Below, piece after piece: positions 11,266-47,595 of a stretch of 64,000 bases of DNA. The stretch's first letter is position 1. Each line of letters begins with the position of its first letter. The notes beneath the pieces were generated by a model. The model saw nothing but the letters and a program-made list of their open reading frames with translations. It did no database searches and was not told the DNA's origin. The DNA is from Botryllus schlosseri (Eukaryota): assembly GCA_051294905.1 (NCBI GenBank), contig CM119373.1:33046001-33110000 (forward strand). Reading direction: 5' to 3'. Made by a program: the position numbers and the translations under genes.

Positions 11266-11645
11266 ATCGGGATGACTCATCGAGCTCGAACCAGATGGTA
11301 TTAGCCTGTACCCGACTACAGAACATAGAAATATTATATCAGTACTTAGTCTTGTGGTCCTCGGGCGCGATTCGAGCCGAGGTCAACCCGAAAAGACCGA
11401 CCGGACTTCGACTTCTTAACCAATGGGGGCGCCTGACCTAGGCAATTTTTGAAAGGTGGTGTTGGAGCAAAAAAAGGTCAAGAACTACCGCCTTAGATGA
11501 ATTCGTCTATCTGGAAATCAGATTCTTTTCAATTATTCCACGAGAAACATTGTAAAAATTTGCAACATCTGCTTTACATTGGAATTAAATGATGTTTGAT
11601 CAATGCACTGGATAGGTATTGGATAGTTTTAATAAATACGCGTAC

Positions 11646-11811
11646 TTATTGAAAGGTATTTGCTCATCAGCTTGGTAACTTTTTCATCCAAAATCAGCCC
11701 GTACAAAAGTTGTCTTGTCAGCTCCATTCTACTGTCGTTCAGTTGGGTTGCAACGAATTTCTCGACTTCCTCTCTCGTTAGAGTCGTGACGTGTAACGCG
11801 CAGCAAAACTC
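11646..11811 (-). CDS. NLR-like gene: exon following the NACHT exon (winged-helix/HD2 region)
   Basis: Acceptor TTTTAG|GAG, donor AA|GTACGC, 166 nt, phase 0 to 1. Open: EFCCALHVTTLTREEVEKFVATQLNDSRMELTRQLLYGLILDEKVTKLMSKYLSI. Completes the F.H.T.QE motif begun in the upstream exon (FAHQTMQ|EF) and contains the typical R.E....L.GL. Confidence 0.85.
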
Positions 11812-16620: not shown

Positions 16621-18341
16621 GCATCAGAATAATAACTGGAGCTGACTTGAGGTGCACCAAAAATATAAAAATCAAGGAGTTTAGTAGGCATAAATCACAG
16701 TCAATCACTAAATCGTTGGATATCCTGGTGATATTTGAGATCCGAAGCGATAAAGTTCATAGTTGGATTACCAGGAGATGATTTTTGATGGAACAAATAA
16801 ATTATTCGGGATGGTGTGAGCCCAAGAAATGTTTTAGTTAGTGTGAACGCGAACGTTTTTGTAAGTTTCTAAGAGATCGCGACAGTGAACATAAACCCAT
16901 GAGGTCAGGTGTTAATTCGAACCCTAGCATTTCCGGAAATTAACATGTTACTGTAAAACCTACACGATATCTAGCGACGACTCAGGTCACACTATGCCAC
17001 AATGCTGAAGTAAAAGCTGACTTTTTAATTATTGCCAAGAGTATTTACGGCAAAAATCAAATCCTATTATAATTCCTTAAGAACAGTATATCCTGTCGCT
17101 TTGCCAACAAGTTGGACAAGGACTGGCCAGGGGAATACAAACTTACGCCTTAACGACCAAGACCCGACCACATAATGTATTCTTAAGCCGCCAGACTATT
17201 GCTACATTGATATTGATCAGCTTATTGGAGGTACTGAACTTCAATATACAATTGAATAGTATACTCATATTGAAATGAACCCGAATATTTACTATTTGCT
17301 GACGATTACCCCTGACGAGTGTCAGCCGAAAATATTCGGGTTCATTTCTATATGAATATACTATTCAATTGATATTTATCAAAGTGAAATACTGGTCTCT
17401 GGCTACATTTATTACCATAAAATTAGGTTATACAGTAGTCAACACCCAGAATTGCCGCACCCCACAACCCCCCAATTGGAGGGGCGAGCTGAAAGGGGTC
17501 CCAACAATGTTCCCTCTAATTTTTGACGAGTCTGCGCACACTCACCAACTCACTGCGCAGACCTTTGGACAACAGTGCGTGACGACTAAAAACAGGTCAT
17601 CACTTCGGTTTTTTTTTGTGCGCAACATACATTTTCTGTGCTCAGAGACCGTGTAAGCACTGCGCGTTTGGTTCCAAAGTTGATTCGTAAATTAACTTAA
17701 ATTTATAGACTATTTTCTTGAATATTTATAGCACTATTTTCAAATTTTCTTCACGATTGGCGCGATTTGTTGCCGCTAGCTGTATTGATATTAATATGGG
17801 TAGACTACTCTCCACCAAGAAAAAAACGCATAATTTATAGCGATAAGCGTTTCGCCGTCTCTCATTACCGCCTGACGACACAGCAAGACGTTGACAATCC
17901 CGTTTTGGGTACCGTATTTTGGAAATCTGAAAAAAGGACAATTTTTCAAAATTTTCAAATTCGCATAATAAGAGAAAAGTCGCGAAAAAATGGTAAATTT
18001 TTCCCACATCGTGGTCAGTCGACTAATGAAAAAATAGTCAACTTCCTCGATCAGCACCCAAAATACAGGTTCTTGTTCACACCTTGCGTTTTATGAAGCT
18101 CGCATTCAATGGAAATGAAATGTTTCTGGACAAAGTCGGAAAGTAGGATCCATAATTTTAGGTTCGTGTGCATATTTTTATCGGCGAACACAAAAAAAAA
18201 TGGTGTCACAATAGTTTTCTTGGCGCAATATAATCGGGATTTTGCCAGGCTATCGAGACGCACAAAAAAATTGCTTCATAAGGTTTGTGGAATACTGCCC
18301 ACGTCTACATATTGGTTCAAAAACGTTAGAATAACACTGAC

Positions 18342-19483
18342 CTGCATCGTCTGGTGAGCGAACTGGGAGGATGTGTCGATTGATGTCACGGTATCGAGAT
18401 CATCATCGGGGTCGACCCCTGTAGACAAGAAGTCATCCAACACTTTTGGATCGATTCCCAGACTGCCCAAATAGCTGTGCGGGAAAACGAAAATATTTTC
18501 CCGCATTGCGTTATATGCAAGCTTTGTAATGTCACGAAAATGCTTTCCGGATGATGGGCTAATAAATTTGCGGAAAAACGCTGACATGAGACCTGAAAGG
18601 CTATCGGGTAGGGTATTGTGATTCTTTTTAAAGATTTTCGTCATATAGTTGAGAAACATGGGGTTTCGACACAAAGACAGTATTTCCGGTGAAGTATGTT
18701 CGAGTTGGGTGAACATCAAATCGCCGTCAATTGATTGAGAGAACGCGATGTCTTTCACGTTTTCATCGTCTAGTCCTCTCAATCCTACTACTTTGTCGGG
18801 TTTCTGATCAGCCTTTATGTTCCAGTAGGTGTTCCAACGCGATGTGGTGAGGACGCGAGCATCACCCCATATTCTGCCAGACATGATGTTAGCGATGATG
18901 TCATTGGCTTTTGCAAGAGTGATTGCACTCACGTGCGGGTACATTTCTTCGCCGAATTCTTCTAAACATTGATCGAGACCGTCGATTGTTATTAAAAGCT
19001 TGGATGAATTATTTTGTAACCATTCTGCACCAGCCTCTTGCTCGCGGGGACTCAACTTAGTCTCGGGATCGTGATGCATTTTTTCCGTGAATAACAAACG
19101 AAAAGCTGTGGTAGTGCTACGAGTTTGAAGCGTAGCGGCAGATACGAAATGAACGACTTGGATATTGTCGAGCGTCTTAACATTGCCATCGGCGACATCC
19201 AAGCTGTATATCTCTGACAGTGTCGACTTTCCCGCACCGGCTTCCCCGAGGATCGTCACATGCTTCGGAGGTTTCTCATTCCAAGGATCGTGAATTTGAT
19301 CGAGGCTGATCGCTTCAAGATCGCGGCCAAATAAACTCTTGCCGTCAACATGACTGGACTGAACCCCCTCTGCACTGGTGCCCTTCATATCTATGATCAT
19401 CATTGTTGGTCGAGCCGAAAGCTTCTGATTAACACGTATCTCTTTTCGCAGATGAATCTTGGTCTTAGCAAGAAATCCCTGTT
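18342..19483 (-). CDS. NLR-like gene: large NACHT NTPase exon (1142 nt)
   Basis: Acceptor TTTTTCAG|AA (phase 1), donor ATGCAG|GTCAGT (phase 0). Walker A ILGEAGAGKST, Walker B LLITIDGLDQ, sensor VLTTSR, LRGL, LCRNPMF, LAY, FAHQTMQ. Fully open. Confidence 0.95.
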
Positions 19484-20510: not shown

Positions 20511-21546
20511 CACCTCACTCAGCTCTACCAAATGTGTTTACGTGAGCAGAGAGGATAAAAATTGATCTCAATTTACATGCAATTCCCGATGATATTGACC
20601 AATTCAATCATTAATTAGTGAAATTTTCGCACTTCGCGCGAATAGGCGAGAATAGCTGCCTCGGTAAATGGACACCCATTGTAGATACCAAATAGGCTAT
20701 CAGCAAATAGCGGACAGCCTATAGTGGGGGTCTGGGAGTGAAGTCTCCCGGAAGTTTGGTTTATCACCCGATGTTGGCCAAGGACCAACGTTTTTTGTTG
20801 GGGGGGGGGGGGGGGGGGTGACGAAGTGCTGTTACGGCCCTGGTAACGAATAACGAATAATTGTACCTGCAGGCACGCCTGAATATGTTTAATTATTAAT
20901 TACGTGCCCTTTATTTTCCTATACAACAGCTCACTCAGTGCTACTGGTAAATCTGATTACGTGGGCTGAGAGGATGAAAGTTTATAGCGACTTATATATG
21001 TAATTACCACCTATTCAATCATGCATTATGGAAAATATTGGTACCTAGGGCGCCAGGCCACACAAACTTTTCTGACCATCAAAATCACGATATGGGGTTC
21101 GTGGGGGCGAAGCCCTCAGAAGTTCGGTTTATCACGCTATGGGTGCGCAAGGCAATCGTTTCAGGGGGATTAACGAAGTGCTGTTACGGCCCTCCCTCTT
21201 ACTCATTGTCTTTATTACATTCCTTACAATATGTCATGAGAGTGAAACATGTTCATAGGTAAAACATTTAGTTCCCTGTGATACGCATAACTATTCTACT
21301 GATGTTTTACGCGAAATGTTCTTCCTGTCGCAGCCCTATATAGTTAACCTGACTCCAAACTGGTTACCGTATTGGAAATCGTACGGAAATCTTATTGGGT
21401 TACGATGGCTGTCTCTCAGACGTACCAAATTACGGGCGAAATTAAAATCACACTTTGTAGGATGCACACTATTGATTTTGTCACATAATCGTTTGCCGCG
21501 GGAAAATTCTCTGGGGATCGCAGGTTGCATTACCCCCGCATTGGTT

Positions 21547-21837
21547 TTAAAAGGAAGTAAGAAACACTTTTTTCATGAGGGTACTTAAGTCTAAGGGCGT
21601 GAGTTTAGCAATGTAGAAGCTCTTCCTATAAAGCCATCGACGAGAAGAAATAAACATCTCGAAAGTCGCTCGTAAATGAATAGCTAGGAATGTCTGCCCG
21701 AGAATCAATTCTGAGTAAATGCAAAATGCTTGTATTATCCAGTGCATTCCTAACAAAAGAAATACTTTCACGTAAATAAAAATTCCCCAAGACAGAAAAT
21801 GACGATCGTAAGCCTCATAATAGTCATCATACGACAT
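21547..21837 (-). CDS. Intronic 96-aa hydrophobic ORF; candidate alternative first exon (21837-21585) of the NLR-like gene
   Basis: CAACAATG start context. About 42-residue hydrophobic stretch. A phase-1 GT at 21584 (TTA A|GTACCC) would join the NACHT exon in frame, but the donor is weak. Confidence 0.35.
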   Translation of the reverse strand: MSYDDYYEAYDRHFLSWGIFIYVKVFLLLGMHWIIQAFCIYSELILGQTFLAIHLRATFEMFISSRRWLYRKSFYIAKLTPLDLSTLMKKVFLTSF

Positions 21838-23196
21838 TGTTGAGTTTCAATCCAGTCGCCGGTAGGAAGTTGGTGAAATTTACAACATATATTTATGGAA
21901 GGCTGCTGCATATAACTTCTGACTCAAAATCTTCCCGCCACCGGCGAAACCCGAATGGAGATTTAAATTCATGAACAGAATCCCAACGTCTACGTTTGCG
22001 AACAAAGGGACGTGGAAATATGCACAGTATCGTCGTATCAACGACTGTTTTAAACTATATTTATTTTGCCAATCATCGTAATTTTCCTTACGGGCAGGTT
22101 GCTAACCGCATCATGGATGTATTAATCAGTTTTACTGTGAATAAAGAATATAGTGATACCTATTGCATGTATTGCAGGCATACATATTGAACACGCTGCG
22201 TGTCCGTTGTATAATTGTAATAGCTTGTGAAATATTTCGAAATATTGCTTCTATCCATAGTCTTCGGTATGAGACCGATTTTGAAACTGTTTTGAGTCTT
22301 GCAATGGATACGGTTTTGTATTGTACGCCGTGACTAATATTTCGACAGTGTAGTACCTAATACCTCTGCGTATAGCTTTGCCCGATTTCATCGCTCGCTT
22401 TATGAACCGGTTGCCGTCGTTGTGTATGAATTAAACTGATATTATCAAGCATAGAAGCGGAATGCAAGCCGCGGGTAGAACGGTACAAAGAACTTCATCA
22501 CCATGTACCGTCCACACAATTGCTTTTGCATGTTACATATTGATTGCATAAACCTCATAATCGTCAATTCCCACTCCTTGACAACGTTAAAAATTCGGTG
22601 TAAAAATAGAAAATTCATGTTTAGATATTGACAAATATATACCAATGACAATTTATTTCTGATTGAATCTAATTTGGTAGCATACAGCTAAAATAGCATT
22701 TGAGAAAATGGTTCGTTTCGTCAGACAATAAGCTGCTCTTCTCCAATGCCGGTGCTCTGCTAGCAAACGAAGTCACGAAATTAATGTAGATTAATCTTCT
22801 TTACCCTTGCAACAGGCGGACGACTATTTACAAGCTATAATTTACAATAACCGGCGATACAATTGACCCAATAAAGACTCCATAAATACACAATGACAAT
22901 CGAAAGCTCACAATATTATCTAATCGGTTAAAACTGCTAAGTAAATAAATATGTATATCGCTCGATCAGAGCAAAACGGTGTGTTGAGTGATGTAGAATA
23001 GTAAAGCAATTGCTAAATGGTACAACTTATTTATATTTTATACTGCAATATTTATGACCGGACGTATATACCAAGCATACCGACTTCCCGTAGCCTATAT
23101 TCTGAAGTGCGTGTCGTTTACTACAAAAAGTTGCTAGTGAAAGTCGGCAATATGGAAGTAGCGTAAAATCGATCCTTCATATATATATTAACTTAC

Positions 23197-23268
23197 CTGC
23201 TTCCAGTCTCAGATGCTCTTGATCCACAATATTTTTCGAACTGCCAACAGGATGTGTAGCATGTATTT
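23197..23268 (-). CDS. NLR-like gene: 72-nt linker exon (phase 1-1)
   Basis: TTGTTGCAG|AA ... GCAG|GTAAGT. Open: (E)IHATHPVGSSKNIVDQEHLRLEA. Joins the NACHT exon in frame (G|AA = Glu). Confidence 0.85.
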
Positions 23269-24513
23269 CTGCAACAATTAGAACATTAGGGATTTTATGT
23301 AAAATAGGGTCTTGAAAGAGAGAAGGAATGATATTTTGCAGTCCAAGTATTAGAGCCTCGTGCGACAGCAGCTCAACAGCCTCAATATACTATAACACTC
23401 CCAAGTTGGCGGAACAGCACTTGAATATGTTTCAAGATTCTTTGCAAATTGAACAATAGATTTCTTTTGAAAACGTATGAAATAATTCATTCAGGTACGG
23501 CACATTCGATATCTATGGATTAATTTGGTTCGGAGTTTAATATTATACATATACTGTAAAAGTAGTATCGCTCGTTACAGAATCGTGACGACACGCGAAT
23601 GTCTATGCCCGTATGGCAGCACACCGTCGTGGGTACGAAATATCAGTTGAAAGTTCATGACGGGATCTTCCTTCGATACACTCTCAATCCATCTACTAAA
23701 TCGACAATCCATTCATGACTTCAGAAAATCCGAATCAGCTGTAGAGGAGATGTATTACCAATGAGACAGTGGCACCGAAAATACTTAAAAATTCTTTGTG
23801 ATAATTCCATGATTACAGTACGCGAATTTGTCTGCAATTACATGCTGGCAGAACCTTTCCTCACATGCAATAAACTTTGATCTGCGCGAGTTATGGGGTC
23901 TGTGACAGATGATTTATGTTTGTTTTTTTTTTTTTTTTTTTTTGGGGGGGGGGGGGTGTAAAATAAATTCGGATCGACGTGTAATTTTTTTTTTATATCA
24001 CCTTCCACGCTAACAAACCAGCCATGATTTTTAATGTGAAGTGTAGGTCTTGTATCATGGTATGTATTGCCACATATGTTTAATCCAATACCATCATTGA
24101 GTGGACTATTTTTGATTCAATTGCAATATTCATAGGGTGGGGGCCTGTAGTACCATAGCCTAATCAAGCAAAATAGTTGGACTAACTAATCACTTGGCAA
24201 CAGAACCACGCCCACATATATGGCTGCAAATCATAGTTAGCTGTGGTCTTTTATCACTATAACGAGGTATTTGAAAGTCAAAATGTCGATTTACGGACAA
24301 TATGTATGTGCCATTAATTTGGTATGTTTGGGCGTAAATCGAAACGTGATTTTACGCCAACAGTTGAGCTGATGTAATTTATTTTAGTCTTGAAGGTACA
24401 TTCTTTATTGACTAGCGGTAGCTTAGATTATAGTACACAACAACACAATATGAAAATTCTAGTTTTTGAGCGTATGTCTCATAGATCCCATGGTCGTGTG
24501 CCGTTGGACCCAC

Positions 24514-24727
24514 CGGGTGGGGACCGATGATACGTTCGTATGACAAATTTTAAAGGTTCATAAACATTATTTTGAACAGGCATATATTCATTTATATGCT
24601 GTCTGCGATAGATATAGCTTGGATCAAAGTGTGGAGTCAGCAAAGTATCTGCTATTATTCTCGGCTGAATATTTGAGGACCAGAGATCATTTTGAAATTT
24701 CTGATCCATCGGTACCACATCTCCCCA
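24514..24727 (-). CDS. NLR-like gene: exon of about 70 aa, possibly a death-fold (CARD/DD)-like helical domain
   Basis: Open frame WGDVVPMDQKFQNDLWSSNIQPRIIADTLLTPHFDPSY...LKFVIRTYHRSPP. Donor CCG|GTGGGT is phase 1 and matches the next exon. Acceptor is ambiguous (24727 phase 0 or 24720 phase 1). The domain call is weak. Confidence 0.55.
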
Positions 24728-25057
24728 CTAACTATATAGGTTATATATATTAAATGGAACTCAAACTGACTTTAGACACTAATAGTGTAGCGTTTATTAA
24801 CCTTTTTAGCGCTCCTACCGCTTAAGCTTTCAATAAAATTCTTCGTACCGCCTGTCTCTTTTCTTCACCATTCTTCGTACGGGCCATTTCATAACTACCT
24901 TTCACAATGTTTACGCACGATTCGCAAACACCCAATATTTCCGTGTCGAGTATAGCGCAGGATTACGCAATTCACGAATGAGCCTTATTGTTCTCTATCA
25001 GCCTACCAGCTATTGGTTGTCTTAGGTGCGCAAAGCCAGAATTTATTTTGTAGTTAT

Positions 25058-25212
25058 TTGTTGTTGTTTGTGGTATTCGCGGTGTTTGTCGACTACTATG
25101 GTCATTTACAACAGGCCGATATTTTTCATTTTTATTCCGTAACTGCCGACTTATAGCGTGGCCCACTTCTAGGCTTTTTGTAAGACACCGCTTACGCGGA
25201 TGAGGTGGTTTG
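25058..25212 (-). mobile_element. 5'-truncated copy of the tRNA-derived SINE
   Basis: Matches the 3' half of 36736-37018 and ends in a (CAA)n/CAAA tail. Confidence 0.8.
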
Positions 25213-26979
25213 TAGTTAGTGAAGCAACTTTGACAGTAATATTGTACTTGCATATAGTTATATTAAATAAGCTATACCACTGGCAAACAAAAACAAAATG
25301 ACTTCTGGGTATTTTGGGGCTGCTGAGTCCGAGAATAACATTTGTGACCATGATTTGGCTCTATTTTTTGAGATATTGATATTTTTTATTAAAAAAAATA
25401 GTTAACTTCAGTAATTGTCAAATGTGAACAGAAGTATCAGTAACATGCATATTGGGAATTTCTCCTAATCCAATGCGTTACTTATTCTGAACCAGATACA
25501 CTACTATGTCTATTCGCTATTGTAGCATCCCATTCGTTCAGAAACAAGGCATTGAATACACTCCATTTTGGACAGCACAAGTTATTTAGCTGTAGCCTAT
25601 ATACAGTATGTTGCTGTAGTGTATGTCATTAACGTCATGAGAGATTTCCTCAGCTTTCTGCAAACTATACAGCGTCACACAGTAAACCAGGCGATGGGTG
25701 TGTAATAGTAGAAGCATCATTCTGATAAGCTGCAGTTTATTTGTAGGCTTTTGTTAACCACATGCAGTGTCGAGTAGCCTACTCCCTGCAATTATCACAT
25801 GACATTAATATCTCATTTGATAGCTATGTAGTCATAGCGTAGTTCTATAGTTGTGTAAGGGGCGTTGAAACCGTATTAATGTACTTGGAGCGTTACAAAA
25901 AGTAGCGCTTGTGCTTTGACTTCAGCTGTTTTTGTTTGCTGCTAATATCGCCTTATTATGCTTGATCTTCACATGAAACATGATTCTCGTTTGCAAGGCT
26001 CTCTGTGTTAACGATTGCGTATTTAGCGATATCGCTTCAGAACTAGAAGAATAAGATATGCCCATGCTCGAAGACAGAGGTAGACTCATCAACGTTGTAG
26101 AAAAAGAGAATTTCACCTAAGTAAAAATTTAGTATTTTTCGCATTTTTTAAATTGAAATATGAAATATCTCGAGAAATGGAGCTAATTCGGACAAACTAA
26201 TGTCAATTTTTTGATTCAGCGACACGCAAGTACCCTTAGACCATTGAAACTTTCTTGGCACCGAAATGTGTCTTTATCAGTGTATTACACGCCGAAACAT
26301 ACGTCTTGATGTGTCCTGTACCGGAATTTATAGCAGTCGCCTAAATGCCGGTGCCTAATAGTCACGTACCAGCAGTTTGCACGGCCCATCCACGGACTAA
26401 ACATTCCCGTACGCTTTTTTGAATATAATATTTATACTATTATTTGGATATGGTTATATCCATACAAAATTAAAATGTCCATTGACAGGAAATCGCGCGT
26501 AGCGGAAGCAAAGTTTTTCATTTGAACAAATATACCCAGAAACATTCACCTGTGTTGGTTTGCGAAATGATTTTGGGTTTTAAATAGGGTATAATTCCAC
26601 GATGCATATGGTACTCCCTTTTGAGGTACTTGCTTGGTACCCCCAGACACGGACCACTGGTTCAGAACCCATGTACTAGAAATAATACTCTACTCCCAGT
26701 TCAGAAATCACAGACAGCCCCGTGACGTAGGCTGCGAAGGAAAATTTGTTCGTAGGTGATTTGGTGACCAGAGTTTATCGACCGCTGTGGTTGTTTTACA
26801 CGGTGCGATATGTTTCGGTCAGATGTGTTTCGGACTGATGTGTTTCCAAAACTCCGACTCCGCGTTGGTGAAAATTCTGCGACCCCGCCTATCAACAACC
26901 GTGGTATCATTATATTTTGTAGTCAAATTAAAATGTTGGTGAGTCAATATAATGCTACTTTCGTCATTGTAGCACTTAC

Positions 26980-27069
26980 CATAAATGTACTGGTCTCCTG
27001 CAACAACGTTCACGGTAGAATTTCCAAACTGTTGAGTGACGTGTTCACCTTCAGCCAATATTGCTTGTC
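26980..27069 (-). CDS. NLR-like gene: 90-nt phase 1-1 exon with RHIM-like motif
   Basis: TTTTGTACCTTAATAG|GA ... TATG|GTAAGT. Open: QAILAEGEHVTQQFGNSTVNVVAGDQYIY(G). In frame with the MAEGG start exon (A|GA = Arg). Confidence 0.75.
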
Positions 27070-28877
27070 CTATTAAGGTACAAAACGTTGTAACAGGGCA
27101 TTTTCATTTTTTAATCGATAACATATGATCCTCAATTTCAGCTGCGCATGAGTCCACCTATGCGACGAGTAAATATAGTTATATCGCCGGAATTATGTCA
27201 ATACCAGCTTGAAGAGGGCTAAACTAATATAAAATTGTTGGAGCTAAGTATTGCAACACAGTTTAAAAAAATGTTAATTTTGAAGCATTCCGATATACGG
27301 TATCCTGGTAAAATATTTCTTATTGTCCTCGCATTATGTAAATCGAAATGTTATTGTCAATTTCTCGATTAAAATCGATGCTGGTTGAATATGTGTTCGA
27401 ACGTGGTAACTCGGGTCATTGGTGTACTTGCGAGAGTGGGAAAAATCGGAATTCAATGAGTTAGGAATACTCCAAATAGGATCTCATTGATTTTATTAAT
27501 CGATAAAGGATAAAATTTCACACTACTTAGCAAACACCAAAATCTTGAATAACAAGAGAAATTAAAGACGATGGTTATTACGGTAAATAATGAACGCACA
27601 CCCAGCATCAATATTAATAGATTGATATTGTCATAAAATGCATATAAGAGCACATGAAGACAAGGGAAAAGCTAAATAAGTTCGTCTCTGACTGCTATAT
27701 CTCAGGTTGACTGACTGTTGAGTAGAAATAAGAAAACAATTGGTCTTTCTCATCAATGCTACTAGCTTGTGGAAATATTAATTCTGCTCTTTGTATAATA
27801 GCAATGATATAGCGCGAGGTATATATAAAAGTGAAGCATGAACCATAGGCTTAGCCGGAGAATTATGTGGTTTTCAAAAAATAAATTTGATGACGTAAAA
27901 GACCCCCTCCGCTTGTAAAGACATGGAAAATAGGGGTAAAAACGATGGTGCTGGGCCAATATTGGACGAATTACACAACATATAGGGGATCTTCATACGT
28001 ATATTCCACCCACAGACATAATGGTAATATTATGCAAAATCAGTATGCCATCACTTCCGCGAGTAACGCGAAATTTATTCGAACTTGCTGTATGAAATCA
28101 GGTGATAATATTGTTACTTGCATATTTCATGTACGATATCATTTCAGATTTACGGTAGAAATAGTCGCCTACAAAAAACATTCAATTTAAAACAAACATG
28201 TTGTTTATTTTATTTTTTTCTAGTTGTGACGTCACGACTCTTTAATTTTGAAGTCACATTGGATTGACATAGACAATTGAAAATAGAGGGTAAATATGGC
28301 TCTTTCGACGAAAAGGGCTTCCGACCACTGTAAACAGACCAAAATATCTTTAACCGGGACTATATCGTTATGCAGAATTTTTACGGTCGGCGGTCATCAT
28401 CACCAGAACACCTATTCTGTGCCAATAATCCATATCTACTTGCTATAACTGTTAAAACGTCGACGATTCCGAGGGTTCCAACCACTCCACAATGTATAAA
28501 GCGACTATATGGTATGCAAATCATCCGTAGGCTAGTAGCCTACTACATGTTTTTATGACAGTAATTACACAACTATGCCTAATTATACAACGTTTAAAAA
28601 AACTTCTTTAAGGCATTTGTCTAAAACACCATTTAAAACATGTTTTAAACAAAGTGTTATAAAAGACCATTTGCTCTAAATGCAACCCTACCGGTAGATC
28701 TGAATGAAGCGGTGTCTTCAAATATTTTGTGAAAATGTAATTATACATCTTGAGCTATATGTTCAATGTTCATGCCAGACGGTAAGACTATTCATGAGTT
28801 TGTCGAGCGTGAGCGTCGATCAAGCACACCGTCATTGCTGTTTGTTATTCATGTTGTTTCGATAGTATTTATCAGTT

Positions 28878-29650
28878 GGTCATTTTACCCAAGGCCGGTA
28901 TTTTTATTATGATTCCGCACCTACCGACTTGACGCACGGCCCACTACTAGGATTTGTAAGACAACGCTATAAAAACCTCCAACACTTAAGCAGGAATTCT
29001 GGATTTGACCTCAGTCGGACTCAAGGTTGTAATGACTCGAGTCATGACTCGACTCGATTCAGACTCGACTCACGATTTTTGATGACGCGACTGACTCGAG
29101 TCAATCTGTGCATTGACTCGACTTGGACTAGAGTCATTGCGCATGACTCGAGACTCAGACGACCAAGAACGACATTTCATTGTAATTTCGAAGAACAGTA
29201 AAGTAACCACCCTATTTGGATTACGTCTATTGGTACTGGTACTTGAAAGTGCGACCAGAAACTTTTAAAAGTGAGGGAAATTAGTATATTATAAATACGA
29301 ACCATTCGATATGACCAAACAGAGGTATAAAAGTGGATTAAACAAGACTTTAAATGGAAACTGAGCAGTCAACACAATGACTTGGACTCGGACTCGAGTC
29401 ATATTACCATGACTCGAGACTTTAACTGGAAACTGAGCAGTCAACACAATGTCTTGGACTCTGACTCGAGTCATAATACCAGGACGCAGACTCGAACCTC
29501 TGCTCGATGACTTGGACTCGAACTTGACTCATTGGGAATTGGAAATGACTCAACTTGACTCAGAGCTTTGTGACTTGGTTACAACCCTGGTCGGACTCGA
29601 TCCCGCAGCCCATTGGTGTTGTGGCAGTGGAACGTACCACTGTACGCGAT
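28878..29650 (-). mobile_element. tRNA-derived SINE copy interrupted at its B-box by a hAT MITE
   Basis: Body 28878-29021 is similar to the other SINE copies. Head 29590-29650 has B-box-like GGATCGAGTCC on the minus strand. Confidence 0.7.
29022..29589. mobile_element. hAT MITE with GACTC(G) subterminal arrays, 568 bp
   Basis: TIR CA(A/G)GGTTGTAA. Perfect TSD GTCGGACT at 29014-29021 and 29590-29597. Internal duplication of about 70 bp near 29350-29480. Confidence 0.92.
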
Positions 29651-30203
29651 CTTGTTTATACCAACCGCCATTATCGCTGCCATGCTTTTATCACATGATT
29701 TGTGGAGAAAGATCGCTCACGCGTTGCTACAACAAATTAAAAGATAAACTACTTTCGTGAGGCAAGAACGATTTCCAATATGCGGAATATTGTCCTCTGC
29801 TGATCGAATTTGTACCACTGAACTCATAATGCACTATGGCCATCCGGCACGATCTTCGGCCAAGGTTCTATCACCGTCGATCTTTCTGGGATCGCGCGTA
29901 TGGTATGTCTATTTTTGCGCCGAAAAGCTGTTGGCTATTATCCCCGCAACCGCAGCCAGCACACAGTTTTATTGAATTCTGTACTTCGTTCGTATTTTTG
30001 TTTGAGGCTATCTACTCAATTTTTATTTATCGTAACACTGCATGTTATACACAACAATTGATAAAATCTACTGTCACCAATCCCACTTTACATGACACGA
30101 AGCGCGAAAAATAAATTTCAAGTTGAATATCTTTGCTCAAAAATTTATCCATATTATGTTTACGTACGAAAATTTTCGATATTTGAGGGGAAGGGGTTGC
30201 ATG

Positions 30204-33200
30204 CAGTGGTGGCTTTTGGGGTAGGCGAGGTAGGCGGTCGCCTAGGGCCCCCCTGGTTGATTTACGCGCTTTCGAGGGCCCCCCCTCCTCGGTTTACGCA
30301 CTTTTTCCAACTATTTCTCCAGTTTACGCGCTTTTTTTCAAGCATTACCATTTTCTGAATAACCGCGGAATCCTTGTATCCATAAAGAATATGGTATTGT
30401 ACCGTAAAGACATCGAATCTCATTTTTTAGTAATCATTTTACGAATAACCACAAAAATCCATGCGCCAATTTAGAATATGGTACCGTAAGCAGTAGTCGA
30501 TCATTAAATTTCTGCGCTAGTTGCAAGAGCTCACTTTGATTTGATGATCTCTATCTATTTTGCCATTAGCTAAAGGCCCCCCCCTCCTACATTTACGCAA
30601 ATGTTATCATTTTGCAAATAACTGAAAATACATGTACCCATGTAGAATGTAATACCACACACAGAAGTCAATCATTAAATTACTGCACCTGCTAAAAGCT
30701 TACTTTGATTTTATGAGGGGGGCCCCTTCTTCATTTACGCGATTTTTGGTTATCATTTTACGAATAACCGTGAAACTACATGTACCCATGTAGCATATGG
30801 TACCGTAAACAGTAGTCGATCATTGAATTTCTGCATCCGCTTAAAGAGCTTACTTCGATTTTATTAGCCCCCCCCCCCCCTACATTTATGCGAATTTTAG
30901 TTATCATTTTGCGAATAACCGTGAAAATGTATGTACCGATGTAGAATATGGTACCGTAAACCGTCGATCATTAAATTTCTGCATCTGCTAAAAGAGCTTA
31001 CTTTGATTTTATGAGCCCCCTCCCTTACATTTATGCGAATTCTAGTTGTCATTTTACGAGTAACCGTGAAAATATATGTACCCATGTAGAATATGGTACC
31101 GTAAACAGTAGTCGATCATTAAATTTCTGCACCTGCTAATAGAGCTTACTTTGATTTTATGAGCCCCCCCTCCATTTATGCCAATTTTAGTTTATCATTT
31201 TGCGAATAACCGTGAAAATACATGTAGACCTACCCATGTAAAATATTGTCTTGTAAACGGTGTTCGATAATTGAATTTCTGTGCTTGTTAAAATAGCCTA
31301 CTTCGATTTTATGTTAATGAGGTCATATCGTAACATGGAATGAATTATTATTGAGTATATATTTCCTAGTGGCAGCAGTGTATATTTCAGTGCATCAAAA
31401 TTTTCCAGTATAAGTTTGTGAGATTCTACTTGCTAGCTCTTGATGCCAGCTTTCATATGATACCGTATGTTAATTGATAATGAACCGTGTCCACACTGAG
31501 CCTGAATATCCAAAATATCAAAGGAAATAGTCATTTGAAAGCCAATGAAAGCATAGGCTATTATAGCCTATATATTGTTGTTTACTGAGCCATTCTCTTG
31601 ACTCAACAGATAAGTTGTGAATTGGGCCTTTTATGAATGGAAATCCATTCTCAGGGTTGGCATGATGGTAAATTTGTTCATTTCTTGTCTGCGGATTAGC
31701 AGCGTATTTTCAAAGCTTTACCATGCTCAATGTGCCCCCGGTACAGTCGGTCAGAAAGTGTTTATGGTGTTGTCAGAAAGTGTTTTTTTATCACAGGTGG
31801 ATGTCTTTTAATTGGTGGTGTACTATAGATAGATATGCAATACATCTTGCATGCAGGAAAGTTTCTAGCGGCCTGATGCCCGATATTTTATGCCTCAAAA
31901 ATCTATGTCGATACTTGAAAGGTTTGAATGGCTATCATTGAGAAAGGTGTACGAAAGGCTACATATATTCAATTTGTTGTGAGGTTGATAATTTAATGTG
32001 ATGTCACAGAAAAAGACCAAAATGTGACCAAACAATTAGCAATGGAATCAATTTCAGCAGGGCAGAGGAAAGAATTAAATGATCACAAGGCAAGTTTTTG
32101 CAACTTTTTTTTACAGCTTCTGGCAGCTTCCTAAATACTCGGTAGTTATGTAGTATGGTGTTTTAAGCTGTTTGGAGGAATCTTACATTGCGACTTTTCT
32201 TCATTTTTTCAAGCAACTTTTTGCAGCTTTTCGATTTTTCATGCAACTCACTTTTTACTGGAAATATTTGGTACTTTATGTAATTAGATCGCTTGATTAT
32301 CATCACTGTCGTTTAAATTTGAGGTCATTTCTCAGTTGACATACATTCAGGCTAGACCGCCGTAAATTATATTAGCCTACTACTGGGTCAATTTTTTCAG
32401 GCTATTGATTTTGTTGAAGGCGCCAACACTGAGTTTTGCGACAGTGCCTTGGATACGCATCGATTCGAGTATCTCATACCTTAATAATGTCAAGAAACGT
32501 ATCCATAAATGTACTTTTTTAGTGTAACTTTAGTGAAAATTAAATGAAAAATAAATGCAACTTTTTACTTCAACTTTTATGAAAAATATGTGCAACTTTC
32601 CACGGATTTGACTGCAACCAAAATTTGCCCTTAGATCAGGTGTTGCATAAGACAATTTTGACCATTACACTCTTGAAATGGGCTACCAGTTCAATATAAA
32701 TGTGACTCGGTAAACAGCATATTTAGTAAGGGGCACTCGTCAGTTGACAACCGTACCTTTCATTAGCTACGATGAGTTTGGTATCACTCAGTTATATGTT
32801 ATGTTGTAATTGGTAGCATCAGTATCTCCTAATTACTGCAGTCAAGTACCTGTTACAATGCCGCGAGTACATGCTAAATGTAAGTCAGGATCTCAGAAAA
32901 GGAAGTGGTTCAGATTTGGAAAGAAAGTGACAATGCAAATTTTGAACTGCGACACAAATATTTAACCATCTATTTCAGCTCAGGAATGTTCTGCACAAAT
33001 TGAGGATGATGCTGTTTTTCCACCAACTATATTGCCTTGTAGACTTGAATGATGTAACAGTGCTTTCAAATACGTGTATTGTATTTGATTGTAGTGGTCT
33101 TTTGTCTATGCTAGTTGTGGCGTTTTAGGTTCAATCCAACCAGGCAAGTTCTTACAGACAAAAATTTTTTTTCTATAACTTACAATTTTTTAATTAGTGC

Positions 33201-34054
33201 GTGTTGTTTCGTGTGTGTAACTGTTTATTTACAAATTGCGCTGCTACTATAGTACCGTATGTCCGTATACTTCAAAGTTTGTTGTTGTTGTCATTGTTAC
33301 AATGCGAATATCATGGTTTGTGATTTTGATTGTTGCGTCATACTTTGCCGTTTTGATTTTGCTTTTAAATCTGTGCAGTTAACTCTTGAAGAGAGGCACC
33401 CAAAAATTATCCGAGTTCAATAAATATTATATTACAATGGATGTTGTATTGAAAGCTGTATTCTTACAGATCATGGAACTAGCTCTTCACAGGTGATACC
33501 AGTACTGATGTGTTCCTGTGGTATTACTGGTGTTGTACCACATTGCCGCACATTTTGCTTTTATGCCTTATCATGCAACAAAATCTTCTTTATAGCAAAA
33601 AGATAGGCCCAATCCAGCACCTGGCTGAAACCTTGACGTGGTGTGCTGGCTTATTACTAATGTCAGCCGACAGCTTTCTGGATTTAAGTGGTATATTTGG
33701 CGTGCAGTTGCCTTGTTATACTATTATGTCATGCTACATCCCATAATTCTTCTACATAGGTGGGTCTGGACACGCGCTGTAGTTCACTTGAGTCACTTGT
33801 TTTCGAATATGCCAAGTCGATTATTGTACTGTGGCATGACATTATAATTATTTTATATGCTGAAAGTTTCAACATGATGTACAGAGAAAGCACTACCGGA
33901 AGAGCGTATACGTGGTGTAGAACAATAAATGTATCGTTAAGCGCTAGTGAGGGGGGTCTGGGGGGCGTAGCCCCCCGTAAGTTGAGATAATATAGATAAG
34001 GAGGGCGCCCCCGGAAGTTTTGCCTAGGGCCCCCCAATCGTAAGGCCACCACTG
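30204..34054 (+). mobile_element. Large non-autonomous hAT element (3851 bp)
   Basis: TIR CAGTGGTGGC(T/C)TT. Perfect TSD GTTGCATG at 30196-30203 and 34055-34062. GCCTAGGGCCCCCC at both ends. Short ORF MPRVHAKCKSGSQKRK (32858-32965) resembles hAT transposase N-termini. Confidence 0.9.
30255..31310. repeat. Minisatellite, unit about 145-165 bp, roughly 6-7 diverged copies, inside the hAT element
   Basis: Recurring TATGGTACCGTAAA...GTCGATCATTAAATTTCTGC...GAGCTTACTTTGATTTTATGAG(C)n block, e.g. near 30478, 30798, 30948 and 31093. Confidence 0.9.
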
Positions 34055-34284
34055 GTTGCATGGCCACTTTGGCCCTTCTTCTGACTACGCCTATGGCTTG
34101 AACCAACACATCAAATAGACTATTGACAAAGTCCAAAGACGGAGGAAACGAAACAGATGAAGAAATCTTTTGAGTAATTTTATATATTAGAAAAGGATAT
34201 TTGTGACGAAACGACTGCTACGTGGACATTCGTAAACGAATAATCTTTCCTATAAAGAGCAAGTCGTGAAAACAGCCAACTCAC

Positions 34285-34348
34285 TTTCGATAGGTTCAGA
34301 TGATGGAATGATACTTTGACCACGTGGTTTGTGTCCTCCTTCTGCCAT
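34285..34348 (-). CDS. NLR-like gene: putative first coding exon MAEGGHKPRGQSIIPSSEPIE
   Basis: ATG at 34348, strong donor AAA|GTGAGT (phase 1), acceptor at 34370. Possible 5'UTR exons at 34454-34418 and 35323-35248. Confidence 0.6.
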
Positions 34349-45347: not shown

Positions 45348-47595
45348 GTATGTAATGTTCAATAACCAATATCACGATGCTCATATATATTGTGTATACA
45401 TACAAGGATATGTGAATCTGAATATCACTACGAATGTAGGCCTACAATAACATTGGTTCTTTTGATACCCTTGCGGCTTCAAACATTCCAACACCGTGGG
45501 CTGGGCATTATCTGTGCTAGAGTAGCCGGGTATAATCTGAGGGCCTAGAGGTCACAGAGCGAATAATGCTAATTGTCTTTTACATTGAACATAATTTTGT
45601 AGATTTAGGCCGTAGGCTACCTATTTCATTTCACTCTCTGAAAATGATGTGGGTTTATGACTGTTTCACAAAAATGTCATTCCTATAGTAACATGCGTAG
45701 CTTTGTACTACATGTTATGAATGTTGCGATACGACCAATCGAGGGTTTCAAGGCTTCCGCGGTGAAGGAAAAGTCATCGACACTATAATCCCCATTAGTG
45801 CTGTGTAGATTTTAGTGGATAGAGGCGTTTTTAAGTTCTTGGAAACATCGTATCTCACTACTCGACTAGAATCAGTGCAATTTCTACACGATTCGAAGTC
45901 TAATTATAGCATCAATTTGCCCAACCCCGATAAATTTCACTGTTATGATTCCGATGCGGAACTGGACAATGCGCGGTTACTGGTAGCTATTCTCCTCGAG
46001 GGCTGACCAGAGCCTTCCACGTTCTAGAACTGCGACTTTGACATAGTTCTATCACTCTCCCTGAACGCATAACAAAAACTTGCATGAGTTTAACCTATAC
46101 GTATACAGTATAGGCCTATATCATATCAAGTTAGGCCGTAATTGTCTACGCAAATTAAAACACACGCGGAGATATTATTGCTCACACGATAAGTCAGACT
46201 CTGCGTCTTTTGAATTTGTTTATTCCTGTTGTGGTAATGTCAAATTTCGTGCTACGAATTACGATATATTTTCGGAATGCAGCAATTCTCTGTTTGGCCA
46301 AGCTTACATTATGTGTGAATGTGTGACAGTTTTTCGATCATTTCTTGCACGTTAATCTGATTTCGCATATCCGTCAAACTTGATTGATATTTTAAAACAA
46401 CACTCTCTTCACAATACTCCCTAATTCCGGGTTGATTATTATTTATAAAATTTGCGAATACGAACCGGCTCAGTGCGGTGAACCGCGGACGAAATTCAAA
46501 TCCCGATGTCTGAGCAAGTGCATTACTGTTTTGCGAAATCCTTCTCGACGACTCCTTGTAGCACAATAACTCTACAACTGTTACTAGTGACTTCATTACC
46601 GAAAATTAGCGAGCAGAATTCGACTACAAACTGACATAAGCATCAGAAAGTATTGGACTTCAAGAGGTCCGTGCATTTTCCTCGGCGGTAATCTCATTTG
46701 AGTGGAATATGCGTAGGATCGATATTATCGATATTATCGTAGGCCCAAGTAAGATGTTGCAAAACCAATTGCGCCTTCCGATATTTCCTAAAACATTCCA
46801 CTTGGCGTGCATGTGGAAATTAATTCCTTTCGTTCAAAATTAGAGTTGAACTCTACTGGGGTCGCAATACAAAAGTATTATACGATTGTTGATGAATCTA
46901 GTAAAATGTCTCCAAAGGCGGCGTCCAAGTTGCTACCTTAACTCTGCGTCTCAACTCAAAATTGGTAAGACATGGGCTATTCGGACCATGCCTGACTCGA
47001 CACGAGGTACACCTTCCGTAGCTAAACTGCAGTGTGTGTCAAAGTGTGAGCTCGATTGATTGATTGAGTGATTGATTGATCGATTGGTTGGTGGATTTCA
47101 CCGAGCTGTTTCGAATATCCTTTCTTTCTTTAAATTGTATCACAATTCTTGTGGTATGAGAATTGACGGAATTAATATTAAAAGATAATGTGATTCCAAA
47201 ACATTCGATAGTTTTGAGTACCGAATCGGCGAAATGATCATTTCATTTCGTATATTGGTACAGACAAATTCTCGCAACGGGTTGGCGCCAGCGAAATAGC
47301 GTGAATTCAATAGCGGTAAATACGCGTCAATTGACAGAAACGGTTCGAATCATTTCGTGAATATCGAGTCCTGTAATGAGGTTTGGACCACTTGAAAACT
47401 TTCAGTTTTTCCAAATAGGACTATTGAATGAGAATTATAGCTACACAGTTTTACCACATTGGATTAGAATTAGAATTATAGCTACACAGTCTTTCCGAAT
47501 GAGATTACAATTAGAATTACTGAATGGGCAAATGAAATACAACAAACATCAAGTGCATGGAATATCAACTCTGAATTCGTTCTCATAGCCTTGAT

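Follow-up and report, generated by a model that had tools for sequence, protein, structure and literature searches.

Like-with-like contacts are known to couple sensors to effectors both between CARD domains (NOD-RIPK2) and between RIP homotypic interaction motifs (RHIMs; ZBP1 or TRIF with RIPK3). Signaling by NLR proteins through short self-templating motifs is documented in fungi and bacteria, and the RHIM is, to our knowledge, the only reported case of it in animals. The closest precedent lies in Branchiostoma, where Kajava et al. (2014; PMC4262963) describe a large and heterogeneous family of RHIM-NACHT-repeat proteins; later surveys of amyloid motifs linked to NLRs deal with fungi, bacteria and archaea, and the RHIM is the only animal example that they cite. 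Here we analyze a stretch of 64,000 nucleotides from Botryllus schlosseri (assembly GCA_051294905.1, contig CM119373.1, positions 33,046,001 to 33,110,000; hereafter, the window), the minus strand of which carries an NLR-like NACHT gene. As a preliminary description of the window had put forward, this gene is headed by a short motif on a symmetric exon (26980-27069). The motif stands at the position usually taken by a death-fold effector domain. The same motif heads many other NACHT genes of this genome and is found again next to exons for IRE1-like kinases.

The Branchiostoma floridae proteins (BF82280 and others) resemble the Botryllus gene in being invertebrate and NLR-like, and in having a short amyloid-type N-terminus that replaces a CARD-like domain. 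With these proteins on record (PMC4262963), it is not a new idea that the head of an NLR may be of the amyloid type in an invertebrate. Those heads were found with a profile of mammalian and viral RHIMs, whereas the Botryllus motif fails to match the RHIM, and because every RHIM test failed here the comparison suggests that the motif of Kajava et al. is a different one. The resemblance to RHIM proteins at large (RIPK1, RIPK3, ZBP1, TRIF and the Drosophila cRHIM) is one of general plan: a short, unstructured-looking motif of some 20-30 residues in which N, Q, G, V and I are frequent and an N-x-[ST] step leads into a hydrophobic strand ending in Gly, borne by sensors or adaptors and by kinases in place of a death-fold domain. 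Unlike these proteins, the Botryllus motif lacks the RHIM tetrad and shows no profile similarity to the RHIM in either direction. The search for other carriers that the preliminary description had suggested, with RIPK-like partners among those in mind, did lead to kinases, yet to IRE1-like ones; moreover, in RIPK1 and RIPK3 the RHIM is C-terminal to the kinase, whereas here the motif is N-terminal.

The amyloid motifs of fungal and bacterial NLRs (HRAM/HET-s, PP, sigma, BASS1-10) offer a second term of comparison. They too are N-terminal on NACHT or other STAND proteins, span some 25-40 residues, share the beta propensity and the composition of the Botryllus motif, and recur on a putative effector. 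In these systems, however, every NLR has its partner effector next to it, with the motif at the C-terminal end of the effector, and motifs differ between pairs; in Botryllus a single near-invariant motif, in at least 150 copies, heads the NLRs, and the copies on the effector side are N-terminal and non-adjacent. The coupling principle is shared as well with the effector-associated domains (EADs), small non-enzymatic modules found on STAND NTPases and on enzymatic effectors (Kaur et al. 2020, PMC7159879; 2021, PMC8195603), although these are folded and mostly alpha-helical. A single one of 30 motif copies read (L018:1462-1581:-) shows a weak alignment to Pfam EAD10 (PF19954; E=0.12) over 38 of 40 residues, and its 12.8 bits fall below the cut-off of 24.1, which places the family outside EAD10.

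Read directly from the minus strand, the motif exon runs ag/GA CAA GCA ... TAT G/gtaagt, its boundaries being ...ccttaatag/GACAAGCA...ATTTATG/gtaagtgc, and it encodes (R)QAILAEGEHVTQQFGNSTVNVVAGDQYIY, the frame-3 translation QAILAEGEHVTQQFGNSTVNVVAGDQYIY leaving two bases leading and one trailing. Two sets of Logan contigs (X1 and X2) and two raw bulk RNA-seq runs (X18 and X22) were mapped on positions 21130-27129 of the window. Both contig sets behave like RNA, with empty introns, and both contain a junction between 26980 and 23268 that skips 3711 bases and reads CT..AC on the plus strand, hence GT..AG in the direction of the gene. X2 includes a contig of 970 nt whose positions 718-807 fall on 26980-27069 and whose positions 646-717 fall on 23197-23268; the contig goes on for 163 nt upstream and 645 nt downstream, both outside the mapped stretch, and no piece of the 645 nt past exon 3 lies within 21130-23196. 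A 208-nt contig of X1 joins the motif exon to 87 nt upstream and 31 nt downstream. These spliced contigs establish that the exon is transcribed with both ends exactly at 26980 and 27069, as the 90-nt phase 1-1 exon of the preliminary description had them, and the motif exon is thus real and expressed.

The onward path drawn in that description did not survive. It had led through a weak acceptor at 24720 into a possible death-fold domain, whereas the only junction from 26980 goes, in the two runs, to 23268; the transcript contains no death fold between the motif and the NACHT domain, and positions 24482-24727 have no Pfam match. As an exon, 24482..24727 (minus strand) was rejected: no junction reaches it from 26980, it belongs to no Pfam family and it has no counterpart in the paralogue alignment, and the RNA depth over it comes from repeat-like contigs that extend into unlike sequence. 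Close by, RNA depth in each of the four runs is very high over positions 24930-25329, where reads and contigs likewise run into unlike sequence; an expressed repeat family lies here within intron 2, and it is not part of the gene. At 21530-21929 the four runs show zero depth and no junction.

The gene would thus be built of exon 1 (21 aa), the motif exon (residues 23-51), a linker exon of 24 aa, a pre-NACHT region and the NACHT domain (Table 1). Exon 1 ends in phase 1 and is phase-compatible with the motif exon, the two reading MAEGGHKPRGQSIIPSSEPIE-R-QAIL... across their boundary; the chaining from a MAEGG start exon proposed earlier is upheld to the extent that phase allows it and that a duplicate of the gene keeps exon 1, while the junction 34285>27069, like 23197>19483, is predicted from phase, from the paralogue and from the contig and word data of X2. 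The linker exon (cag/AAATAC...GAAGCAG/gtaagt) would continue in frame into the NACHT exon as ...RLEA-E-QGFLAKTKIHL..., and the acceptor at 19483 is strong. X2 contains 73% of the index words of the NACHT exon, and the same small runs also contain words of the motif exon. That this exon encodes a NACHT NTPase, as first described, is confirmed by a match of its open frame (19505-18279) to Pfam PF05729 (E=1.6e-12, with a score of 48 bits where the cut-off is 26.7) and by the P-loop GEAGAGKST. Its 3' end lies before the stop at 18278, probably after QFAHQTMQ, and the open frame at 11632-11811, in which Pfam finds nothing significant, probably continues the ...QFAHQTMQ / EF..ALH pattern typical of the region after NACHT. 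No Pfam repeat family that could form a C-terminal sensor (LRR, WD40, TPR, ANK) was found in ten downstream open frames, and a homologue search with the NACHT exon returned two Logan fragments. The motif exon would encode the N-terminal signaling module of this NLR-like protein.

A paralogue 362 kb away on the same chromosome arose by recent segmental duplication and is still 80-90% identical, in its introns as well. It retains all four exons, with equal lengths (64, 90 and 72 nt) and intact ag/gt sites: exon 1 has the same 64 nt, ATG and donor, and the splice sites of exon 3 are likewise kept. Its NACHT exon (C3:33426535-33427737) is 93% identical and contains an in-frame TAA, and the duplicate may be a pseudogene in spite of its intact exons 1-3. 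Some 6.2 kb of intron 1 (27844-34098 in the window) are absent from it, the alignment jumping from 34099 to 27843.

The motif exon belongs to a large family. A search of the genome (495.5 Mb) with the 29-residue peptide gives 131 places, and a profile of 30 copies at least 150, scored among 196 candidates and all with a genome-wide E<=1e-4, so that conservation in paralogues, which the preliminary description had left as a condition, is amply borne out. The window exon scores 71.5 bits against this profile. All 150 scored copies lie in short open frames (39-156 aa), none in a long one, and in nearly all of the 30 copies that were read the exon follows an ag acceptor, with the phase unchanged. 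The 30 copies give the consensus xAxLAEG[DE]xVxQxFxN[SA]TVNVVAGDQ, in which L4, G7 and G24 are invariant and a further ten positions reach a conservation of 90% or more, A2, A5, V10, Q12, F14, N16, V19, N20, V21 and D25 being nearly invariant. Many copies go on with I/Y-x-x-(V)-I-N-G-K or I-N-x-N-K-[IV]-V-x-N-I-T, followed by an acidic linker rich in Ser, Thr and Pro.

Purifying selection acts on these copies. Over the whole exon of the 30 copies, the mean proportion of synonymous differences (pS) is 0.60, near saturation, against 0.24 for nonsynonymous ones (pN), and in the core (residues 14-26) the values are 0.62 and 0.15, which gives a dN/dS of ~0.13 after correction. By codon position, identity is 51% at third positions and 75-77% at first and second ones, whereas the 87 nt of intron upstream of the exon are unalignable among copies, at 33% identity. 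The motif is also far steadier than the domain that it heads, remaining 60-80% identical to that of the window where the NACHT domain is only 24-28% identical to the window's; examples are found at C9:22.61 Mb (motif exon at C9:22614434, NACHT exon at 22616649), C14:19.56 Mb (C14:19555853 and 19556402), C2:31.57 Mb and C10:12.64 Mb.

The motif spans some 30-40 residues, among which V, N, Q, G and A abound while K, P and L are scarce: the combined share of Q, N, G, V and I is 46%, versus 26% in the NACHT exon, and that of K, P and L is 6.6% versus 20%. The same bias has been reported for NLR-associated amyloid motifs (bioRxiv 10.1101/2020.01.06.895854), and the Botryllus motif agrees with this class in composition, in its conserved G, N and Q residues and hydrophobic pattern, and in length (~25 residues in the class) as well as in its N-terminal place on a NACHT protein. 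Its alternation of hydrophobic and polar residues looks like three short strands, xVxQxF, VNVVAG and I/Y-x-x-N-K-I-V, separated by turns at N-S-T and D-Q.

Not every copy is intact. Two of them (L002 and L005, at C1:23581199 and C1:23710589) lack the ag acceptor (ccatt/TT) and run into a TGA, and are probably decayed; three further profile matches carry TGA. In some genes (L016:235-474:-, L027:1953-2249:+) a second, more divergent motif exon follows the first after ~0.5-1.1 kb in the same orientation; these are either tandem motif repeats or alternative exons.

Pairs of motif and NACHT exons were counted by eye against two partial NACHT lists, with 103 of 202 and 94 of 224 candidates scored. 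Within these bounds, 67 of the 150 motif copies are followed on the same strand by a NACHT exon no more than 12 kb away, where ~0.3 would be expected by chance, and ~17 more by one at 12-23 kb. A large NLR family, specific to this lineage, has the motif as its common head. A coordinate cross-check over the whole genome revealed no links between motif exons and matches to Death, CARD or TIR_2, and a genome search for NB-ARC gave zero matches. One motif exon (locus pB, C3:25404000-25433999) has neither NACHT nor kinase within 20 kb and only a LINE (long interspersed nuclear element) insertion. As for the 116 Pfam Death-domain matches themselves, most are open frames of ~100 aa with identical scores, and many form inverted pairs ~10 kb apart, such as C4:20656892(+)/20667428(-), C5:25440527(-)/25450416(+) and C12:17220158(-)/17243607(+); they look like a mobile element or a duplicated cassette with a death-like open frame in its inverted terminal parts.

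The second architecture is best seen at L013, a motif exon on the minus strand at C3:57836-57922. Its donor (TTCGGAG/gtgagc) is in phase 1, and a kinase exon ~1.15 kb downstream begins, after the acceptor aaatttcag/GTTGGAAAG, at codon position 2, so that the phases fit. The 118 residues of kinase that were read pass the cut-off of Pfam PF07714 (PK_Tyr_Ser-Thr; E=3e-5), and their 13 best matches in the PDB are all IRE1 (E ~1e-4), the next family having E=0.04; they cover the DVA[IV]K and Y[IL]A[IM]ELC...L.EY[IV].Q signature of the IRE1 N-lobe, and their frame stays open for 284 aa in the genome. Exons for the KEN domain (Ribonuc_2-5A, PF06479) lie on the same strand 8-10 kb past the kinase, at C3:47598-47822 and 46480-46644, and from their proximity it is possible that motif, kinase and KEN form one gene (C3:46480-57922). 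L013 thus resembles IRE1 and RNase L in its kinase N-lobe, including YIAIELC...L.EY, and in having KEN exons on the same strand, and differs from them in having no lumenal or ankyrin sensor part and an NLR-type motif at the N-terminus instead.

This arrangement is repeated elsewhere. A genome search with the kinase piece revealed 41 paralogues, two of which, on C9, have kinase and KEN in a single open frame, and five significant motif exons, L013 and the four in Table 1, are followed on their own strand by an IRE1-like kinase exon at a distance of 1-5 kb, with ~0.03 expected by chance. All five kinase-side motifs would be N-terminal, in gene models drawn from phase and proximity, and none is adjacent to NLR genes. 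The kinase-linked exon of L013 (C3:57.8 kb) has its closest NLR-side relative in the motif exon of the window, to which it is 60% identical. On the same chromosome, KEN-domain matches cluster at C3:13.05-13.79 Mb (open frames of 590-650 aa) and more than 20 IRE1-like kinase paralogues at C3:16-23 Mb (280-380 aa); the two clusters look like an expanded kinase/RNase family.

Table 1. Exons of the NACHT gene (positions in the window) and motif exons elsewhere in the genome that stand upstream of an IRE1-like kinase exon
Feature	Position	Strand	Kinase exon	Description
Exon 1, coding part	34285..34348	-		MAEGGHKPRGQSIIPSSEPIE plus one base; ATG at 34348; 64 nt; 21 aa; phase-1 donor gtgagt
Exon 2, motif exon	26980..27069	-		90 nt; phase 1-1; ends exact in spliced contigs of X1 and X2
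Exon 3, linker	23197..23268	-		72 nt; phase 1-1; encodes (E)IHATHPVGSSKNIVDQEHLRLEA; 24 aa; overlooked in the preliminary description
Exon 4, NACHT exon	18279..19483	-		Acceptor ctactataatttttcag/AACAGGG (tttttcag/AACAGGG); phase 1, starts at codon position 2
Later exon, probable	11632..11811	-		EFCCALHVTTLTREEVEKF...; open frame; post-NACHT helical region
Motif exon	C3:20090104		20088426	
Motif exon	C3:20181638		20178843	
Motif exon	C3:21663592		21668276	
Motif exon	C5:3175232		3176475	

Taken together, the position of the motif at the death-fold site, where linker-like sequence flanks it, its near-invariance across more than 100 divergent sensors and its recurrence on enzymes lead us to propose that it serves as a homotypic coupling tag between NLR sensors and kinase/RNase effectors, a proposal that in our judgment could fall either way. 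The motif would do the job of the CARD or PYD that usually holds its place: oligomerization through NACHT would cluster the motifs, and the cluster would bind the same motif on kinases of the IRE1/RNase L type, thereby concentrating these effectors. Oligomerization is what activates IRE1 and RNase L, and it would in the same manner switch on the recruited kinase/RNase. The near-invariance of the motif across NLRs points to a hub arrangement like that of PYD-ASC and not to private receptor-effector pairs such as those of fungi. The weakest step of the scheme is the nature of the contact, for which we can only tentatively suggest an in-register beta-sheet (amyloid-like, cross-beta) assembly of the kind known from the NLR amyloid motifs of fungi and bacteria; binding, partner identity and amyloid behavior are all features that we infer. 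In its fullest form, the proposal would be that of an amyloid-type motif of the animals' own, distinct from the RHIM and borne on a symmetric exon suited to shuffling, which wires more than 100 NLRs to IRE1/RNase L-type effectors by templated homotypic assembly and has RNA cleavage as its output; in this form we deem it unlikely.

Several observations weigh against such coupling. The joining of exon 3 to the NACHT exon and of the motif to the kinase is deduced from phase and proximity and not from reads, and zero reads fell on the motif exon in the two bulk RNA-seq subsamples, which therefore indicate low expression there. The links to kinases are few, only five, and the KEN exons may belong to a neighboring gene. 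The motif has no match to the RHIM, to HET-s or to any PDB or Pfam family, so the amyloid analogy is drawn from position and composition. A search of the ESM-Atlas with the motif returned nothing meaningful, and when 1.84 billion representatives were searched with the profile, the matches were 12 short open reading frames of the same type (from Logan contigs) and three bacterial repeat proteins, with no vertebrate RIPK, no fungal HET-s and no full-length annotated protein bearing the motif among them. One of the bacterial proteins (P0006, 1468 aa) has Ig-like repeats that start NSPTVSINVVAGDDIIN, and the motif profile matches 13 stretches of it. We rejected P0006 as a relative and regard it as a chance look-alike; it does show that a bacterial repeat protein of an ordinary kind, with no amyloid role known, can contain the core string, which is not diagnostic by itself. 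Our literature search found no description of the motif or of its link to IRE1-like kinases, nor the peptide string.

Of the alternatives, the one that fares best is a conserved peptide, linear or in the form of a beta-strand, which either docks onto a folded partner or folds back as a regulatory element on the NACHT or repeat region of its own protein, with no homotypic or amyloid assembly at all. We consider it rather unlikely: the motif heads two unrelated architectures, NACHT and IRE1-like kinase, which is the signature of a homotypic adaptor (PMC7159879); the tandem second motif exons of some genes and a composition bias like that of amyloid signaling motifs also speak for homotypic coupling. 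Even so, conservation across very divergent NLRs would fit one common partner equally well, no effector with a C-terminal motif has come to light, none of the 150 copies lies in a long open frame, and the presence of the core string in P0006 sits more easily with it.

Homotypic coupling could also be exerted by a divergent but true RHIM, homologous to those of RIPK1, RIPK3, ZBP1, TRIF and the amphioxus NACHT proteins and assembling into RHIM-type amyloid. The residual resemblance comprises an N-x-[ST] step (N-[SA]-T in the motif), a V/I strand ending in Gly and a D/N-Q/N-Y step (compare RIPK3 NIYNCSGVQVGDNNYL and mouse RIPK1 TIFNSSGIQIGNHNYMD), and the motif occurs on kinases, as in the RIPKs, and RHIM-NACHT-repeat proteins are described from Branchiostoma (PMC4262963); we treat this resemblance as a lead, not as a test. 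By every test that was run the motif is not a detectable RHIM, and the kinship suggested in the preliminary description is not supported. The RHIM core is the tetrad (V/I)-Q-(V/I/L/C)-G (PMC9444067), whereas the columns of the 30 copies read V19 N20 V21 V22 A23 G24, that is, V-V-A-G with no Q before the Gly, and the N-S-T spacing is one residue longer than in RIPK1 and RIPK3. The Pfam RHIM model (PF12721; threshold 20 bits), which that description had named as a check, matches neither the window exon nor any of the 30 copies at E<=10, and a genome-wide scan with it peaks at 17.7 bits in unrelated places and matches no motif exon. In the reverse direction (filters off), the motif profile gives human RIPK3 (PLVNIYNCSGVQVGDNNYLTMQ, confirmed against 7DAC) 0.2 bits and mouse RIPK1 (8IB0) -0.7 bits, scores equaled or bettered by 904 and 1754 of 2000 shuffles, respectively; against PDB sequences, a library that includes the fibril chains of RIPK1 and RIPK3, it finds nothing at E<=10. 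With no vertebrate RIPK among the matches from the 1.84 billion representatives either, we regard a RHIM origin as improbable. Finally, the notion of a decaying or non-functional hitch-hiker, conserved through recent duplication only, or of a chance open frame, is scarcely credible: it can appeal to the segmental duplicate, 80-90% identical down to its introns, and to the copies that lack an acceptor or contain stops (L002, L005 and the three with TGA), but in the 30 copies the core is fixed while synonymous sites are saturated and the upstream intron has drifted to 33% identity, and the exon is spliced into RNA and kept on NLRs whose NACHT domains are ~25% identical.

What the comparison brings out, then, is that one strongly constrained short motif heads most of a very large NLR repertoire in Botryllus and reappears on IRE1/RNase L-like kinases, and its phase 1-1 exon illustrates that exon shuffling and tandem duplication can disseminate a module of this kind. 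If the motif does couple sensors to effectors, it would explain how invertebrate NLRs that seem to lack effectors can signal, and it would give them a concrete downstream arm, made up of a kinase and an RNase. If the coupling is furthermore of the amyloid type, the system would stand as a hub-type animal counterpart of the NLR amyloid systems of fungi and bacteria, and amyloid signaling by animal NLRs would become directly testable with a peptide of 30-40 residues.

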